Below, one piece after another: positions 14,889 through 62,350 of a DNA stretch of 64,000 nucleotides; position 1 is the first letter of the stretch; each line of letters starts with the position of its first letter. A program made the translations under genes and the position numbers. The stretch comes from Zygnema circumcarinatum SAG 698-1b (taxonomy: Eukaryota > Plantae > Zygnematophyceae). Under the pieces are notes generated by a model, which was given only the letters and a program-made list of their open reading frames with translations, was not told the origin of the DNA and searched no databases. The stretch covers positions 2,260,525 to 2,324,524 of the forward strand of contig CM074816.1 of assembly GCA_037447605.1 (NCBI GenBank), given 5' to 3'.

Positions 14889-16865
14889 GGGGGAGGGGGA
14901 GGGGAAGGGGGAGGGGGAGCGGCGGTGCGGCGGCGGGAGGCCGCGCACCGTGCGACCGTTCGGCAACGGGGGAAAACCGTACTACAGTATAAGGGGGTCT
15001 TAGTATATCCGTACGGTCATGTCGGCCGCCAGGAGGAGGGCTGCCGTCGTACGGTTCGGAGATCTCCCGTTTGGACGTTTCAGCGTACGGCGATCGGCGA
15101 TGCGCGGCGGTCCTTCAGTCCGCGATGTGTCGCTGCCGTACGCGGGCGGGCGCCCCGAGGAGATCGGTGCCTGTAAAACCGAACAGCTTGAGAAATGATG
15201 AGATTTGAAGTTGAACTTTTGAAAGCCAGTGTCTCAAAATACAACTCTAGATTTGTGAACACGACTCATTTTGAGGAATGAGAAGTGAATTCCTATTTTT
15301 TTCTCAAGTTAGATTCGTATTGAGAACCAATTAAACATTGAAGAATCAATTATAGGTCGTGTTCAGTTGTCCTTCGGTCCACCGATCATCAATGAGATTT
15401 TAGCGGATCGCGAACGGTGTGGACCCGTAGGCTTGTACTGAAATCGTGGATCGGCTCGCTGGAAGTGTGGTACTGTACTGCAAAATTATTTCCCGGGTTA
15501 ACCGGATCCCTCGAATCGCACAGAACTAACTTGTCGAAAATTGGAATCCACACTTGCGACCTTATATATTGAGTCTCTGAACTTTGTTCTTAGACTTTTC
15601 GCTTACTTAAATCGAAAAAGTTCGCCCTCGAGTGTTTAAAGTTCAACAAGATCCAATTCCGACACTGATAATTAAGAAATTTAGGGCTAGTGATAAATCC
15701 ACCGTCTCTCACTGTCTCAACCTGCTCAGTTATTTCCGTTATAGCCACACGCAACGGTCCTAAGGAGGCCGCCGGGATTGGATGTACGGTCGGCAGATCT
15801 TTCCCTGGCCACCGACATTTTGTCCTTTGCGCTATCCTACCTTCATAGGTCTTGCCCTGTAATGCGGTTGGATGTACAGTCACGACAGATTGGTCTCGGG
15901 GAGATTGTCGGTTAGTGCCGACAATCACTACTTGTCCAGCCTGTTGAGGGAGATTGTCGGCGATTGTCGATTGTTGTCGACCGGATTGTTGCCTTTTTTG
16001 TCGTTTTGCACACTGGCGGCGTGTGCCGCATGTGTTGTGTGACTTTCGCTGGCACGGCCACGTGGCGGATGGCTGCTGGGGGGGAGCGGGGGAGAAAAAG
16101 TTTTGGTCTGCCCGCGGTCGCGGTCATGATTGCCCTCTCATGTCTCTGTTCCGAGCCGCTGTTCTATTTCTGCCACCAAAGCACTCGTCCCTAGGTCCTT
16201 CTGGGTCTTCGTGGTTCCCATGTTGTTGTTGTAGTTGTTGTGCATGTTTCACCTTTAATGTCAGATGCCATGTTGTTGGCCTACAGACCATGCATGCCCA
16301 ATTGTCCACACATCCCGTTCCATGGCGCAGTTGCGTGGTACCGGCCCGGTCAACCTCAGTCAGACTTCCACGTGGCCGCCCCTGGAGTCAACAGCCCGGT
16401 CAACTCCCCTTCCGGGGCGGCGGCGCCGACACGCGTCCGTCCGCGGGTCCCGCCGGCGGGCAGCCCGCTCAGGAAAAAGGAAAACCTTTACCTTTGGCCC
16501 ACACGTGCAATTCCGTATGGCGTCCCCTCGCTTTCCGCGCTGGGCTCGTCCGTGCGCACGGGCTCAGCCAGCGCTACATGGAGCCTGTTGAAAGTTGCGT
16601 TGTGCAAAACAGGGTCTGCCATTGCAGTCAACGACGTTCCATGCCCGTTTCACGCAGTTACAACATAGAGCCTCGTTCCGCGCTGCCCGTGAGCTCGCCA
16701 TCGCCCCGACTGCTGCCGGAGCTGCGCCCTCGCCATGGCGGCCGCGGTCGGCGAGCTATCTGAGGCTGCCACGTGTCGCCGCCTCGTCACAGAATTCGTC
16801 AGTTGCCAATGCGCCACCTTGGGGTCTGACACGGCCCTTATCCATGCAAAAATACAGGCGGTTTA

Positions 16866-27731: not shown

Positions 27732-28996
27732 ATGGCGCCCAAGAGGAAGGCCGCCGCCGCTTCAACCAGAGCGAAGCCGGCAAAGCGCGGGAAGGAGGAG
27801 GCCCGAGAGGGGGGGGAAGATGTAGTTCAAGCTTCAACATCAACTGGGACTGCGAGTATCATCATTGAAGCTTGGTACATGATACTGTATTTTAGGGTTC
27901 GTTGGTTGCTGTCTGTAGGGTTTTGAATGGAGAATTCATGGGTTCGAGAATGTATGGAATGCGCTGTAGCATGTGTCACGGTGTGGGTGAAGGTTGAATA
28001 CAGGATGCCTGCTCGTTGGGTATGCAGTTGTGATGATTTTCAGTGAGTATTTTGTCTGCATTGGGCGCATCGCATCGACATTTCAATGAAAAGATATCGT
28101 CATTGAACTAAAATTTATGTTAAATCGCGAGCTCGAGCATACAAATTTTCAGATTGTATTGAACATTCCACCGAGGGAAAGCAATTTTGCAAGGGATCAA
28201 GGTGAATGCACGTTCACTGAATAGGCGAAACTTACGCCGCTTATCGATGAGAACCAAATGATCACCTGCAAAATAATGTCCTTTTAAAATATTTCTTTGT
28301 TTTTTTTTTTTTCCGTCCCGTTTTGATCATCCAACAGCAAGTCATGAGGTGCATTCAAAACTCGAGCAGCCAAGATGGAGAAGTTGCTCAAAGAGGCGGC
28401 TCCCGGTCTCACTGTCTCCATTAATCCGGAAAAGGTGCTCTTATCTCACCCAGCGTTTAGCTTCTCTTTATAATGCATTCAATCGTAAACGCGCACGCAA
28501 AAGAGGGGGGAGAGATGATGGATCCGAGGCACAGGGAGAGAGTATGAGATACAGTGGGAGAGGTATTGATTACAGTGTGTGTTGCTATGTTTGTATTTTT
28601 CCTCCCCTTTTGCTAACTTTGGCAGCCAAGAAAGGGATGCTTCGAGGTGCGAGATGAGTCAGGGACCATCTTCTTATCTCTTCTGGTCAGTACCCTTTTC
28701 TCTCTCTCGCTCTCTCTTTCTTTCTCTCTCTCTCTCTCTCGCCCCCCCATCTCTTTCTCTCCCATCCTCTCTCCCCCATTCGACCATGGGCTATTGAAAT
28801 CCCCACCATCGTCAGAACTTAACCAAGCCTTTACATGGATGAGGGAGGCTCTGAATGGCCCTTGTTTTATAACCTTCGTGCCATTTTCACTCCGCAGGAT
28901 ATGCCGAGACCCTTCACCAAGCTGAAGGCTTTGGACCTAGAAGCGGAGGCAAAGGAAATTTCTGCAAAACTTTCTGAAGCTGCGGAGAAATCGTGA
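27732..28996 (+). CDS. SELENOH: Selenoprotein H (SelT/SelW/SelH thioredoxin-like family), 132 aa, with UGA-encoded selenocysteine
   Basis: Exons 27732-27874, 28338-28434, 28626-28685, 28898-28996 give MAPKRKAAA...IIIEAC-K-S-[TGA 28345-28347]-GAFKTRAAKMEKLLKEAAPGLTVSINPEKPRKGCFEVRDESGTIFLSLLDMPRPFTKLKALDLE...KS*. It has a CxxU motif, a basic N-terminus, an NPEKPRKGCFEV motif and a downstream SECIS. Confidence 0.95.
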
Positions 28997-29020
28997 GGAG
29001 CACTTCACAGCTGAATACGG

Positions 29021-29115
29021 AATGTGAGCGTGAACTGAATGACCTTTTTCAGGGAAAGTCCGCAGACACCTGAAAGAGTGAGCATGGCGACCAGCCATGG
29101 CTTCGCGCTTACATT
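29021..29115 (+). promoter_or_regulatory. Type II SECIS element (selenocysteine insertion sequence) in the SELENOH 3' UTR
   Basis: AUGA 29039-29042 with UGAG 29079-29082 forms the non-Watson-Crick quartet. Helix II is CUUUUUCAGG/CCUGAAAGAG (10 bp, one G-U). Unpaired AAA at 29055-29057; mini-stem GUC-cgca-GAC. Basal helix AAUGUGAGCGUGAA/UUCGCGCUUACAUU (14 bp). Confidence 0.93.
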
Positions 29116-29985
29116 GATGTACTTCAGCATGCGACCTCCTCGCTCTCCCCCTCCTCCCTTCCTCTCTCTCCCTCTCCCTCTCCCACCTCTCCTTCGCCTG
29201 CACACTGCCTTCAGGCATTTCCTAGTATTCACAGTGCATGTAGGTGTGTATTATTTGTACGTGCATGTTCTTTTCCGGACAGATGATATGAAACTCGTGG
29301 TTGCCGAGAATTGTCGATGAGTTCATGGAAGTGGCTACACACTATTGCTACTTTGAGATGCTTTTTAAAATTATATATTGCAGTTGGATTAGGAGTGAGA
29401 TATTGCTAGGATGTTTAACTTCCATATCTGCTTGACAGCTGTATGTTCAAGTATTATGAATGTTTATAATCATCCTGACAGTTAAAGTAAACATGGAATA
29501 TCGTCATCTTTGCGGCGATGAGACGATGGAAACATGCAAGTGCGTATTTTTATCAGGAATGTTTGTTGAGTTGTGGCAATAACACTCTAAAACATGTGCA
29601 AGGTTCTGCCACGAGCGCATTTGTATTGCGCCCTCAACGGATACACCCACCCTCAAGTTTCCTCATCACGAGTACAAAAAACGAAGGGATGTAACACAAG
29701 GCCTGTTCCATCTATCGATGTAAAAAAACTTTTTGTCGACCAACAGCTTTGCTTTAACGTGCGAATTATTGGAAACCTACTTTTCCATGGAGTCAGCCTC
29801 GCAACAAACCAAACTAAACTGATTGCGACAAGAATTCCCATTTCTTCGTTTTCCCAAAATAAATAAGATAAACCATGGTCTCCTCCAGGTTTTATGATTT
29901 TTTTTCATAGGACGCCGATAACTTAAAAGGCCTTTAAGCAGAAAGCAAAGCCTTCAAAGAGACCACTTTGCTGATGGCGATGCCA

Positions 29986-31242
29986 TCACTCGGAAAACCT
30001 GCACAGCAGTAAACCGAACAATCAGGTCACACGAACAAACCCCATCAAGTTACATTGGAAGTTCGTGACATTACAGCGATTAACAACACTCATGTTTTGA
30101 CGTTGCATCCATATCGCCACCCCAGTAGTTAATCATAGTAATATTTAGAGGGGTGCCATGTTATTATGGAAACCAAAAATTGACAACCGATATGACCTAC
30201 AGACCGACATACCAACCAACTTGCGAGCAGGCAGAGGCTTACCCGAGTTCAGAGAGCTTCTGGTGTGCCTCGGCGTAGTCACGGAAGAAAGCGTCCTCAT
30301 CCTGCTCACCACATAAGAAAGTTCGAGCATTCAATGTTTATGAAAGTTCGAGTTCGGAAGAGCGTAGTTGTTTGTACTGAAGGTTTATTCCACATGCTGC
30401 AACATGGACGGAGTTGAGAAACAGATTCAGACTTGACGAACTATGTTACTGATCACACTTGTCAGCTTCATGTTCCATGTGGCAGTTATCAGCTCTAGGT
30501 AACGGCACAAACATTAGCATAGATCTCCACGTATTCGCGGAAGAGGGGGTCTTCCACCAGTGCCTTGTCCGAAGGGAGAACCAAAAGACCGTCGGACTCG
30601 CCCTGGAGCAGTTCCCTGCATCACTCAGTTCCCAGTTTCCGTTCCGTTAACACTGAACAAAACACATGTGTACAGTGTTGGAACCCAAAATCCAAAATCA
30701 GATATTTCTTCCCATTTTCTATCGATTAGGGTTTGAAAATGTGGAGAAGAACTAAAAAAAACATCAGAGTTAAGAATGTTTTTTCTCTTCTTCTTATTTT
30801 TTACAAACTTACACAAAGTAGGAGTTGTCGAACAGAAGCGGCTTCTTAGTCCACGCTCCCTCAAAGCCGGACCGCTCCTTGTGGGCTCGGCCCTGAAGAT
30901 GAACGGAAATACGATGAGAAACTCTACAGGTACAAAGTTTCAAGCATACATGAAAACTGATTCTCCAATGGGACTGAAACTATGCACCATAAATATGTGC
31001 ATAGCGCATCAGACCTCTTATTCCCTCTTCTCCTTCGCCGCCAAAATTCACTTGCACCATGGCCACATTGTGGAAATGCTCGAGATACAGATGGGCATAG
31101 AGAAGAAAAGGAGGAGAACAACAAGTGCAGAGAGTGGACTAGGGAGGGAGAGAGGGAGAGCAAGAGTGAGAGATGAAGAAGGAAGAGGAGAGTGGGGTGG
31201 GAGAGGGAGAGGGAGGGGGAGAGAGAGAAGGAGAGAGAGAGT

Positions 31243-31275
<33 letters not shown>

Positions 31276-33398
31276 CGAGTGAGAGAGAGAGGGGGGGGGG
31301 AGAGAGGGAGAGAGCCATACCAGAGTGTGGGCACCAGAAAGGGCAACAATCTCCTTGTCGCCCAAACCCATGTGTCCGAACACATCACGGAGGTGGTCGG
31401 AACCTGCGGGGCGCAAAAAAAAGGCCTTTACTTCCCCTACATCTTCACCCTTGACAAAAGCAGGCTGCTTTATAATTCGATAAATGTTGTTAGTAATTGA
31501 TTGTGTTTTAAGCCTTCTATAAGCAGGAAAACTAACTTAGTTCTTAAGTATTATAAATTGCTCTAAAGAAGGGAAAAAGGCGCACCCTTTGTGGCGTCAG
31601 GGAGACGGCCCTCCTCTGGGGTCTTCAACTCGTCCTGTCCAATGAGTAAGGACAAAGAGTCAGATTATTTCAGGCTTCGGACTGACATTCAAGCTATCAA
31701 AAGAATACTCAAACGCCGAATGTGAGAGACCAGCTCAAGTTGATCACGATTAACTAAAATATTTATTTCAATGCTGTAGTTTATTTGGTGATGTTTACCT
31801 TCCTGCCCGGGTTGAACTCAATTGTGGGTCCACCGGTGATTTCCACAGCCACAACACCCGCCAGCTGTACATTCCAGGTTCAAGAAAAAGCTGGGTCAGT
31901 AAAGGCATTGGATCCAACTAAAATAGTAGGAGCAGACGGAGGAAGTAACACGTACGGGCAAGTCAGCAAAGGGGAAGAGAGTGGGAGAGAGAAGTAGACC
32001 GATCGTCGGAGGGAGTGCGAGCAAAGGAGATCAAGGGGCAAAAGGAGGTAGAAGAGTACAAGTATCATAATCATAATCTGTATCATAATACCACACAGCC
32101 GACCTCACCATTCCCAAACACACCAAAGCCCCACCCCTTCAGGAAAGTCCGAACAGACTCAAAATCCAAAAAGTTCGCACAACCGCCAACGCCCAGCCCT
32201 TCAGAAAATACCCAACAAAATTATTTAAAAGAACAAACGGGCCGAAAGGACCAAGAGTGCCCGAGACTGATTAAGTGGGCCCCGTCGGCACCTGGTAGAG
32301 GTCGGCGTATGTGATGATGGGGAACATCTCCTTGACCGGCTCAAGGAATTCGACGGCCCAGATCAGCCCGGCGTTGGCGCCGTGCGCGAGCTCCTCGGCG
32401 TTCTTCATGCTGCCGTTGGGCCCGCCCGTCTTCGTCTTCACGTCGTACGTGCCGCAGGAGTGCCATCTGCACAAGGAGAGAGAGAGAGAGGGAGAGGGAA
32501 AGGGAGCGGGAGAGGGAGAGGGAGAGGGAGAGGGGAAGGGAGAGAGAATGTGAAAATAAGCCGACGCTTCAATCAATACACGAGCCAAACAGCCATCTAC
32601 CAACCAGCACAAATCAAACAGACAAATCAAACAAATAGCAAGTATCAAGTTCACAATGTAGAGAAATAAGTCGGCATCCAAAACTTTTGGGCAATGCAGC
32701 TCTATTCTGCGGATCGGGACGTTAGAATTCTTTAAGTTCATTCTCAAAAGGGGCAAATCAACACCGCATATAAAGGAAAGCTGGCACAGAGAGAGAGAGG
32801 GAATTGAGGAAAACAGACAGGAGGGTGGTGGAGGGAGAGACCGACATGGGGGAGAGATAGCGAAACAGGAGAAAGAGAAGAAGTGAGGGAGAGAGGTAAG
32901 GCAGAGAGAGAGAGATAGAGAGAAAGACTTACGCAAGACGGACCATGATGGGCGCGCAGTTCTTCTCTGCACAGCACCGACAGAAGAGCAATGCCACTTT
33001 AATACACAACTGGCCTCTGTATCTCTCTCTCTCTCTCTCTTCTCTTCTTCTCTTCTCTCTCTCTCTCTCTCTCTCTCTTACTTCCTCTCCTTTCTTCCTC
33101 GTCTCCTCCCTCACTTCCTTCACATAGCATCTCTCGCTTCTACTTTTCATCCTACCACAATCTCTCCCTCTCACCCCCTCTTCCCCCACGCTGTCCTGTC
33201 CTTCCCTGTCCCTCTCGCCCTTTCCCTTCCTCTACGCTCCGCTCTCCATAACCCCTCTCTCTCTCTCTCCTCCCTCCCACTCTCCCCCCCCCCTTTCTTT
33301 CTCTCCCATTGTCCCGGACCTGCGATGAGTCCCCGCAGCTTCCTCGTTGCCTTCTCTATGGCCACCTTGTACTCGTCACTCACTACGGGGTAGCCCAT
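29986..33398 (-). CDS. APX: Cytosolic L-ascorbate peroxidase, 246 aa, 10 exons
   Basis: Exons 33398-33320, 32966-32933, 32466-32292, 31864-31799, 31634-31586, 31403-31321, 30892-30813, 30615-30513, 30301-30243, 29998-29986. Motifs [62 protein letters not shown]. No transit peptide or C-terminal TM segment. Confidence 0.96.
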
Positions 33399-56195: not shown

Positions 56196-60030
<3,835 letters not shown>

Positions 60031-62350
60031 TCTTAACCATAAAGTTGACCAAGGGTCTTGACATTGTTCAGTGCTAAAAAAACAAAATAAGAAGGACCTG
60101 AGGATTAAATCAATACTCTACATCTCTTCCCTCTCTCTCTTCCCCCTCTCAGCCTCTCTCTCTCTCTCCCTCTTTTTTCCACCACTCTGTAACGCAATAC
60201 CTATATATACCGCCCTGTTATGGCGGCAGTTTGACAATGTATTTACAAAATCGAGTGCATTTACTCAGCAAGATGGTACCTGATTTGTAGCTGAGAATAT
60301 TTCTGGTAAGAAACTTGTAAGTATTCTTACCCGGCTTAAACGAATGTCCATGCAGCTGATCGTACAACGCCGTCGATTCCTGCAACCGCCCAAGTCGTCC
60401 GCACATTAAAATGTTCAGCTTGCGACAAATACTGTGACCGATGAAATCATTCATGTGCAAAATATTTCTGTACATGTTGTTATAAAAAATATTAACTGTT
60501 GGATTTTTCGTTTTTTTGCTCAGCATTCAATGCAAAACACAATCGAATCCTACACAGAAAAAAAGATACTGGTTTTTTTCTCTTTCTTTTTGAAATTTCA
60601 ATGGTCGACACTTACATTAAGGAAACTCATTCAGCTCACGTTAAAGACGGGTAAAGAGAGGGAACTGAAAGGAGGTAGAGAGGGGAGAGAGAGAGCGAGA
60701 GAAGTGGATATGGGAGAGAGAGAACAGAGGAGCATAGAGAGCAAGTCGAGAAAGGAAAAGAACTTTGTAAATGCTCCCTCACTCTCCCTCTCAGCCTCTC
60801 GGACCCCCTCTTCACTCTCACAATCTATCTCTCTCTCACTCTCTCACACTGTTCCCGCACTCTCCGTATGCGCTACAATTCGGCCAGAGATCTCACATCC
60901 GTGACGACAGACATCACAAGAGGGACCTCTCCTGCGCCTCCTCTCTCGCGCACAGGCGCCGGCTTCTGCGGAGACTGCGATTCCTAGTTTTAGGGTTACC
61001 GAGATGCGGCACGAAGGCTCCCGATGTGGACCCGCAAAGGTGCTTGAATTAAGAAATAGAGGTGAAGAGAGCGGAAGGGAGGGAGAGAGGGAGGGCAAGA
61101 GAGAGGGAGGGGGAGAGAGTCAGACAAAAGGCGGGGCAGGAGGGGGTAAATATTAAGGACTGAAGTGTGGGAGACGCAAACGACGGAACTAGAAGAAAGG
61201 TTCTAGTCATGACCACTCGGCGCAGGGCAGGACATGACCATGACCGGGTCGCCGCGACTCAGGACCATCGCCGTGACCTTGCAAAACATTGCAAAGTTTG
61301 TGCTCAGAGGGTCATCATGACCAGTCGCAGAAGGTCCCGCCTAGGAATGGGATTCGGCCCCCACGTCATGACCCCGGACATGACTTTTGTTTCCCATGAC
61401 CGCCACCTCGGATCAGAACTCGGTCAAAGTGCGGAATTTCCTCCGAGGGTCGCTGCTTGGAAGCTTCGGGAGGGTACGGCTGCGTTTTCATTGGTTGGAC
61501 TTCAACTCTGTCCAACTTTTGCTGACGTGGTTCAACTTTGCTGATGTCACCTCACTCGTGTGGAAAGTTGAAGTCCAGTAAGTTTGAAGCTGGTTGCAAA
61601 CTTCGGTTCGGGGTTCAAAACTTTTCGCCTCAGTTTGCAACTCGGGGCTTCAAACGGTTGCAGAACGTTAGACCAAAGTCACCAAGTGATGGAATGGTTG
61701 CAACCATTTATTGGCTGATCAAGACAACCATTGCCAATGGTTGCAGTCATTGGCTTCAATAGTTGACACCCATTGCCCGGTTAAGCAATTGGCACCAATG
61801 GTTGGGCCAATGGTTGCCAATCCCATGGTTAGAGCTGTTCAACCTTTCTATTCTTGCAGTCCTTCCCATTTCTCTATGTTTCACATCGAACACCAATACA
61901 GTTCCACAAGATGGTGCTTCCAAATTACTGTATCGACACGCCAGCCTTTCGTAACGATATATCGTCTGGAACTTTACGATACGATATTGCCGCGATACGG
62001 AATATTCAAACAAAGCAGATATTTCGTTCCTAGGGCGAGCGAGCGCATGCGCTTAAACAAAGAGGCCGCATTGGGAACTCGCCTGTTTGGGCAGCACCTA
62101 CGGAAAAATGGCGGCAGGAGGGTTCTTTCTGACCTTTCCGGTATTTTTGATCAACGAGAGGGTGTTGTGTGACTTCTGGGTAAACTTGGGGTTCTGAATT
62201 CGGCGTTCAAAAGTGCTCATGTTCATGGAAGCATCTTGCTCGGCCAGTCCGTGCTCTCTTGGTTGCAGACGACTGAACTTTTTTTTTTTTTTTTTTTTTT
62301 TGTACTGAAGTACGCGTTCTATTAGTGACGCGGACACGCGGCAATCCATG

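Follow-up and report, generated by a model that had tools for sequence, protein, structure and literature searches.

[quoted passage not shown]

An in-frame UGA codon in a selenoprotein H (SelH) gene of Zygnema circumcarinatum SAG 698-1b raises the question of whether a SECIS-like fold in the 3' UTR of the same mRNA is the signal for reading this codon as selenocysteine. It also raises the question of whether an extra hairpin, which turns the internal loop of the fold into a three-way junction, belongs to the element. SBP2, a protein of the L7Ae family, binds the SECIS quartet and recruits eEFSec with Sec-tRNA(Sec), and the UGA is recoded. Of all algal groups, zygnematophytes stand nearest to the land plants, which have lost selenocysteine. 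The locus documents an expressed selenoprotein gene and its predicted recoding signal in a zygnematophyte. Selenoproteins and SECIS elements are known in streptophyte and other green algae (PMC6627142, PMC7539508, PMC2375036), and streptophyte algal lineages have the complete Sec machinery, with zero to two selenoproteins in desmid transcriptomes (PMC6627142). The gene lies on the plus strand of the 64,000-nt stretch of DNA that was analysed, here called the window, and coordinates are those of the window unless a locus is named.

The SelH gene and its transcript

The SelH mRNA is expressed and spliced, as recorded by RNA contigs from four runs, and all of its introns are GT..AG. The exons lie at ...27563-27874, 28338-28434, 28626-28685 and from 28898 to at least 29410 or 29516, and the transcript starts at or before 27563. 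Coding exon 1 (27732-27874) begins with the start ATG, encodes a basic N-terminal tail and ends in the TG of the cysteine codon of the CxxU motif. This codon is split by the first intron, which is defined by an RNA contig joint from 27873/4 to 28337/8 with GT..AG borders in four runs. Exon 2 (28338-28434) carries the in-frame UGA, the predicted Sec codon, at 28345-28347 within C-K-S-U-G-A-F. Exon 3 (28626-28685), encoding PRKGCFEVR..., is placed by RNA contig joints and by homology to Selenoprotein H. The last exon (28898-29516) contains the end of the coding sequence, with the stop TGA at 28994-28996, followed by the 3' UTR. It is covered by RNA contigs matching 28897-29410 and 28897-29516, and the 3' UTR therefore reaches at least 29410 (run X1) or at least 29516 (run X4), a length of at least 415-520 nt.

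The joined coding sequence has 132 codons and a single in-frame TGA (28345-28347), with the CKSU motif at codons 48-51. In translation the N-terminus is rich in lysine and arginine, and the CxxU motif, the conserved C-terminal block and a basic tail are all present. The 81 residues past the UGA match proteins named Selenoprotein H with E values of 1e-21 to 1e-26 in a protein search. These come from Chlamydomonas, Pleodorina, Coccomyxa, Haematococcus and one fern, and the Pfam Rdx match to the C-terminal piece is weak (E 0.084). Judged by this homology, the encoded protein is selenoprotein H. No protein from the source genome itself was among the matches to the 81 residues, and the gene appears to be unannotated there.

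Pyrimidine-rich, (CT)n-like tracts of low complexity lie in the SelH introns (28286-28324 and 28692-28756) and in the 3' UTR just downstream of the SECIS (29149-29195), and all three were skipped as repeats when the RNA contigs were placed. A highly expressed ascorbate-peroxidase-like gene converges on SelH from the minus strand (29547-31416). Its open reading frame pieces include ...DNSYF, its poly(A) site lies at about 29547 and it has one intron at 29997-30240. The 3' end of this gene abuts or overlaps the SelH 3' UTR, and the two transcripts are merged by some assemblers. Farther along the window, an open reading frame on the minus strand (57730-58575) encodes a protein kinase domain whose best matches are in Closterium sp. 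Naga37s-1 (75%) and NIES-54 (68%), followed by calcium-dependent protein kinases of land plants. These matches put the genome close to the desmids, inside Zygnematophyceae.

Fold and conservation of the SECIS element

The element occupies 29021-29115 and begins 25 nt past the SelH stop, inside the 3' UTR. Its AUGA sits 43 nt past the stop and 288 nt past the UGA in the mRNA. The first-pass annotation had taken the element for a functional SECIS serving the upstream UGA and had listed a location outside the SELENOH 3' UTR among the findings that would refute this reading; the RNA contigs place the element inside that 3' UTR in the spliced mRNA.

All parts of the element are on the plus strand. 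Helix I pairs 29021-29034 with 29102-29115 over 14 bp, including two G-U pairs. It leads on the 5' side into the internal loop and the 5' half of the quartet (29035-29043), which read CUGA, an unpaired A at 29039 and UGAC at 29040-29043. A29039 is unpaired in the minimum free energy (MFE) structure and lies directly 5' of the UGA. Helix II and the apex span 29044-29078, with 29044-29053 paired to 29069-29078 in a 10-bp helix. Above it, a single G is followed by an unpaired AAA (29055-29057) and by an apical mini-stem of GUC (29058-29060) with GAC (29065-29067), which closes a 4-nt loop. The 3' half of the quartet is UGAG (29079-29082), in which G80 and A81 can form the sheared pairs with A42 and G41. 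The side hairpin comes next (29083-29099), with CAUGGC at 29083-29088, the loop gacca and GCCAUG at 29094-29099 forming a 6-bp stem. Two junction nucleotides, GC, and the 3' strand of helix I (29102-29115) complete the element in 29100-29115. The side hairpin is thus on the 3' (non-bulged) strand between quartet and helix I, directly after the former and 2 nt before the latter, and the internal loop is atypical in having a hairpin as its 3' strand.

The MFE structure given by RNAfold for 29021-29115 is exactly this one, side hairpin included, at -39.7 kcal/mol. Shuffled versions of the sequence fold at -22.4 +/- 2.8 kcal/mol (z -6.2), and none of 200 folds as well. Longer contexts keep the SECIS fold, with the basal stem lengthening to about 29008-29130. 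When pair probabilities are computed in a 161-nt context, helix II has values of 0.93-1.0 and the side hairpin 0.66-1.0. The mini-stem reaches about 0.7, and helix I ranges over 0.39-1.0, with at least 0.86 in 12 of its 14 pairs. The quartet, the 10-bp helix II, the AAA, the mini-stem, the 14-bp basal helix and the extra 6-bp hairpin with its three-way junction, all described beforehand from the letters alone, are therefore recovered in full by the computed fold. The element has the eukaryotic SECIS hallmarks: potential for a G.A/A.G quartet, the unpaired A, the length of helix II, the AAA, helix I and a 3' UTR location in an mRNA whose in-frame UGA falls at a conserved Sec/Cys position. The mini-stem, with only 3 bp, makes the assignment to a type II apex a marginal one.

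The core pattern alone is not rare. A scanner that requires N-UGA, GA, a helix II of at least 8 bp and a suitably spaced AA picks up three sites on the two strands of the window (128 kb), against about 0.8 per 128 kb in shuffled sequence. The other two sites, at 15195-15257 (plus strand) and 60837-60896 (minus strand), have no proper helix I. Together with weak model matches at 61232-61377, which are likewise short of helix I or the 3' GA, they are attributed to chance, and their number agrees with the expectation of about one per 128 kb. What puts the element far beyond chance is its position after the SelH stop, the 14-bp helix I and its conservation in orthologues.

Covariance models had been suggested as a check on the element, and failure of SECIS models had been named as a finding that would count against it. 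The Rfam model RF00031 (SECIS_1) gives no match to it in a 401-nt search, either at the gathering threshold or at E<=10. This miss carries little weight, because the same model detects only two of 14 control SelH SECIS loci, both exactly at the scanner sites, and misses the other 12. A first model built from four close sequences also misses the element and is too narrow. Model R2, trained only on seven other SelH SECIS cores, has its best match in the window at 29028-29089, with 14.9 bits and an E value of about 0.16 for 128 kb, which is not significant window-wide. Its alignment is in exact register over the AUGA, helix II, the AA, the mini-stem and the UGAG.

Orthologous genes provide a further line of evidence. 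Two transcript contigs (L001 and L002) encode SelH proteins 80% identical to that of the window over the aligned C-terminal part, and seven others (L004-L010) encode more distant SelH. All nine have TGA at the same codon, in the motif EACKS*[GSN]AFKTRA. L001, L002 and L010 have a canonical SECIS core roughly 60-80 nt past the stop, and the scanner finds no clear SECIS in L004-L009 or in the Haematococcus locus L072. The chlorophycean-like SelH transcript L004 has a sole SECIS-like site (L004:612-660), with CUGA in place of AUGA, an 11-bp helix II, AA and a mini-stem, in G+C-rich flanks.

Covariation was assessed in an alignment of six SelH SECIS elements, namely those of the window, L001, L002, L010 and two Coccomyxa genomes. 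AUGAC and the 3' GA are invariant in all six. In helix II, 96.7% of the cells are paired, against 35-50% in slid controls, and both sides have changed in eight of the ten pairs. On four of five measures none of 500 shuffles reaches the observed value. Compensatory change in helix II is therefore strong in the related algae where it had been proposed to look for it, and this comparison of orthologous elements speaks well for a real SECIS. MAFFT alignment of the whole three-way elements leaves helix I and the side hairpin out of register, and for this reason these two parts were assessed by folds of each lineage and by shuffles.

The position in the spliced SelH 3' UTR, the structural hallmarks and the orthologous elements with compensatory changes in helix II uphold the initial reading, and the element is very probably a functional SECIS for the UGA in exon 2.

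The side hairpin in green-algal SelH elements

In MFE or core-constrained MFE structures of the window element, of the close relatives L001 and L002 and of the Coccomyxa-type L010, the side hairpin follows immediately on the 3' half of the quartet and fills nearly the whole of a 17-25 nt spacer. Its arms are CAUGGC and GCCAUG in the window, GGAGGCU and GGCCUUC in L001, AGAGU and GCUCU in L002, and ACAGG and CCUGU in L010, with no sequence relationship among the four stems. Hairpins homologous to that of L010 occur in Coccomyxa elongata (L069) and C. subellipsoidea (L070); there, stem changes such as A-U to G-U preserve pairing, and indels are confined to the loop. Pleodorina starrii (L071) has a side hairpin of GACUUUC with GGAAGUC, with a probability of 0.99.

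Chlamydomonas reinhardtii and C. incerta share a sole conserved block in the region 3' of SelH, and this block contains the SECIS (L003:4884-5010 and L073:4100-4226, respectively). Here UGAU is followed by the side hairpin GAGCAGCC-GAAA-GGCGCUC, and helix II holds a further inserted hairpin of about 30 nt in its 5' strand, so that the Chlamydomonas element appears, from its predicted fold, to be doubly branched. C. reinhardtii has a GUGA core and C. incerta an AUGA core, and helix II shows one compensatory pair change (UGGC/GCCA to CGGC/GCCG). Both elements were missed by the simple scanner and by Rfam-style models.

Relaxed scanning adds candidate side hairpins in L012/13, L036 and the Coccomyxa-like L068. 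These are metagenomic SelH loci with 3' spacers of 28-38 nt that hold a hairpin (L012:1674-1790, L036:1311-1420 and L068:1392-1500), and L012, L036 and L068 are likely additional members of the branched class. In another 14 SelH SECIS elements from metagenomic loci, including a GUGA group, the spacer on the 3' strand is just 2-12 nt long and forms no hairpin of this kind.

The occurrence in Coccomyxa, Pleodorina and Chlamydomonas argues that the side hairpin is an old feature of a broad green-algal group, as far as sequence comparison can tell, and it is possibly specific to SelH. The suggestion in the first-pass annotation that it might be a lineage-specific variant does not survive this distribution.

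Support for the side hairpin itself is moderate and comes from predicted folds. In a fixed 26-nt window after the quartet the thermodynamic excess over shuffles is weak (p 0.02-0.48 per sequence); G+C-rich stretches fold easily. A statistic for a single hairpin filling the exact spacer, which counts shuffles with an equal or greater number of pairs and an overhang that is no longer, gives p values of 0.047, 0.0012, 0.01, 0.032 and 0.28 in five lineages, with a Fisher combined value of about 3.5e-5; it is a post hoc statistic whose spacer limits were taken from the folds. The hairpin does not dominate the ensemble in some GC-rich relatives: L002 gives it a probability of about 0.5, and in one context of L010 the value is about 0.

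These numbers leave some room for a real SECIS whose side hairpin is a neutral insertion, tolerated in a strand that SBP2 does not touch, with no role and with pairing that is not under selection. Shuffles of the fixed 26-nt window that fold as well in 2-48% of cases, the ease with which G+C-rich stretches of 17-25 nt fold, hairpin sequences that cannot be aligned between lineages and the low ensemble probability in some relatives would all fit such an insertion. It is nevertheless unlikely, since an insertion at exactly the same junction has persisted in a streptophyte, in Trebouxiophyceae and in Chlorophyceae despite complete turnover of the sequence. A single hairpin at a fixed position takes up nearly all of the spacer in every one of these lineages, leaving 0-4 free junction nucleotides, and the Coccomyxa stem changes keep the pairing while indels go to the loop. 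A side hairpin that folds and has been maintained by selection is the favoured reading and a reasonably likely one. The joint proposal of a predicted functional SECIS with a side hairpin that forms and is kept by selection is, as a whole, quite likely.

Less probable still than a neutral insertion is that the hairpin is a separate regulatory module, one that binds another protein and tunes SelH expression, mRNA stability or localisation. Its presence in SelH elements of several lineages, while 14 other SelH elements work without it, would suit such a module, and the further helix II hairpin of Chlamydomonas suggests that this 3' UTR tolerates or uses add-ons; yet no stem or loop sequence is conserved across lineages, which argues against a sequence-specific binder. 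It is very improbable that the whole is a chance SECIS-like fold beside a UGA that is a real stop or in a pseudogene, for although the core pattern arises about once per 128 kb and Rfam gives no match, the gene is highly expressed and correctly spliced, coding conservation goes on past the UGA, UGA and SECIS are both kept in orthologues, helix II covaries and helix I has 14 bp.

Recognition by SBP2 and comparison with known systems

If the element works as a SECIS with a selected side hairpin, its AUGA/UGAG quartet would form the kink-turn-like core that is bound by SBP2. SBP2 on this core would recruit eEFSec carrying Sec-tRNA(Sec), and the UGA 288 nt upstream in the mRNA would be read as selenocysteine in the CxxU redox motif, with the AAA and mini-stem acting as a type II apex. 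Recognition need not be blocked by the extra helix, which could plausibly extend from the 3' strand. In footprinting, L7Ae covers two residues of the 3' strand beyond those covered by C-SBP2 (PMC1874613), and the 3' strand may thus be the least likely place for an added helix to interfere. We infer SBP2 binding and UGA recoding from established eukaryotic Sec decoding, and any role of the hairpin is likewise an inference. Selection may keep the side hairpin folded either as the compaction of an old insertion or through stacking on helix I, which would pre-set the kink in the manner of the third helix of a k-junction.

The element is a conserved branched variant of the well-known SECIS. To our knowledge, the usual description of a SECIS has no branch beneath its apex. 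No description of a branched, three-way or 'type III' eukaryotic SECIS was found in the incomplete portion of the literature that was searched. The branch lies exactly on the strand that was not seen protected in mammalian SBP2 footprinting, and this form has been kept across distant green algae. The locus is also a warning for annotation, since the Rfam model misses the element and the filter of the original SECISearch discards 'Y-shaped' candidates (PMC3753652).

Eukaryotic type II (form 2) SECIS elements, as represented by RF00031 and the models of Walczak/Krol and Grundner-Culemann, have the same site in the 3' UTR and the same helix I, internal loop, unpaired A ahead of UGA, quartet, 10-bp helix II, AAA and mini-stem. 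The last position of the quartet differs, being G here and W in the KGAW of the type II consensus (PMC2647825). Peculiarities of algal SECIS elements described before include long mini-stems and a G before the quartet. Other algal SelH SECIS elements, including those of metagenomic picoeukaryote-like loci, belong to the orthologous gene, share the core and lie shortly past the stop. Unlike that of the present element, their internal loop is simple, has 2-12 nt on its 3' side and bears no side hairpin, and one group has GUGA rather than AUGA. The SelH SECIS of Ostreococcus has been reported as type I, and the GUGA kind was reported there (PMC2375036).

The closest structural parallel is with the k-junctions of the TPP riboswitch and DUF-3268 described by the Lilley laboratory (PMC4005666, PMC10573300). 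In kink-turn terms, and by analogy, helix I corresponds to the C helix, the 5' loop to the bulge, and the quartet with helix II to the NC helix. SECIS and k-junction share the tandem G.A/A.G kink, and in both a further helix leaves the non-bulged strand across from the loop, giving a three-way junction. This likeness holds at the level of secondary structure only; the 5' loop of the SECIS is larger, which may prevent a k-junction fold, with its coaxial C and T helices and cross-strand A-minor contacts. The k-junctions tested in vitro are neither bound nor folded by archaeal L7Ae, because the T helix of the junction blocks the C-helix side (PMC10573300), whereas a SECIS must bind SBP2, a member of the L7Ae family. 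Because L7Ae fails on the k-junctions tested, it is not obvious that SBP2 could bind a strict k-junction fold, and by the same analogy a true k-junction fold might hinder rather than help a binder of this family.

It is a tentative and rather doubtful proposal that, in core green algae and in this streptophyte, the SelH SECIS represents a natural k-junction, retained since before the split of chlorophytes and streptophytes and still bound by SBP2. If it were so, algal SBP2 would have to read the kink from a different face, or the third helix would be a SelH-specific tuner of recoding efficiency, and filters that reject 'Y-shaped' candidates could be hiding real SECIS elements. Set beside the type II SECIS and the k-junction, the branched SelH element offers a natural test case for how much a kink-turn core can tolerate and for the binding of k-junction-like RNA by proteins of the L7Ae family.
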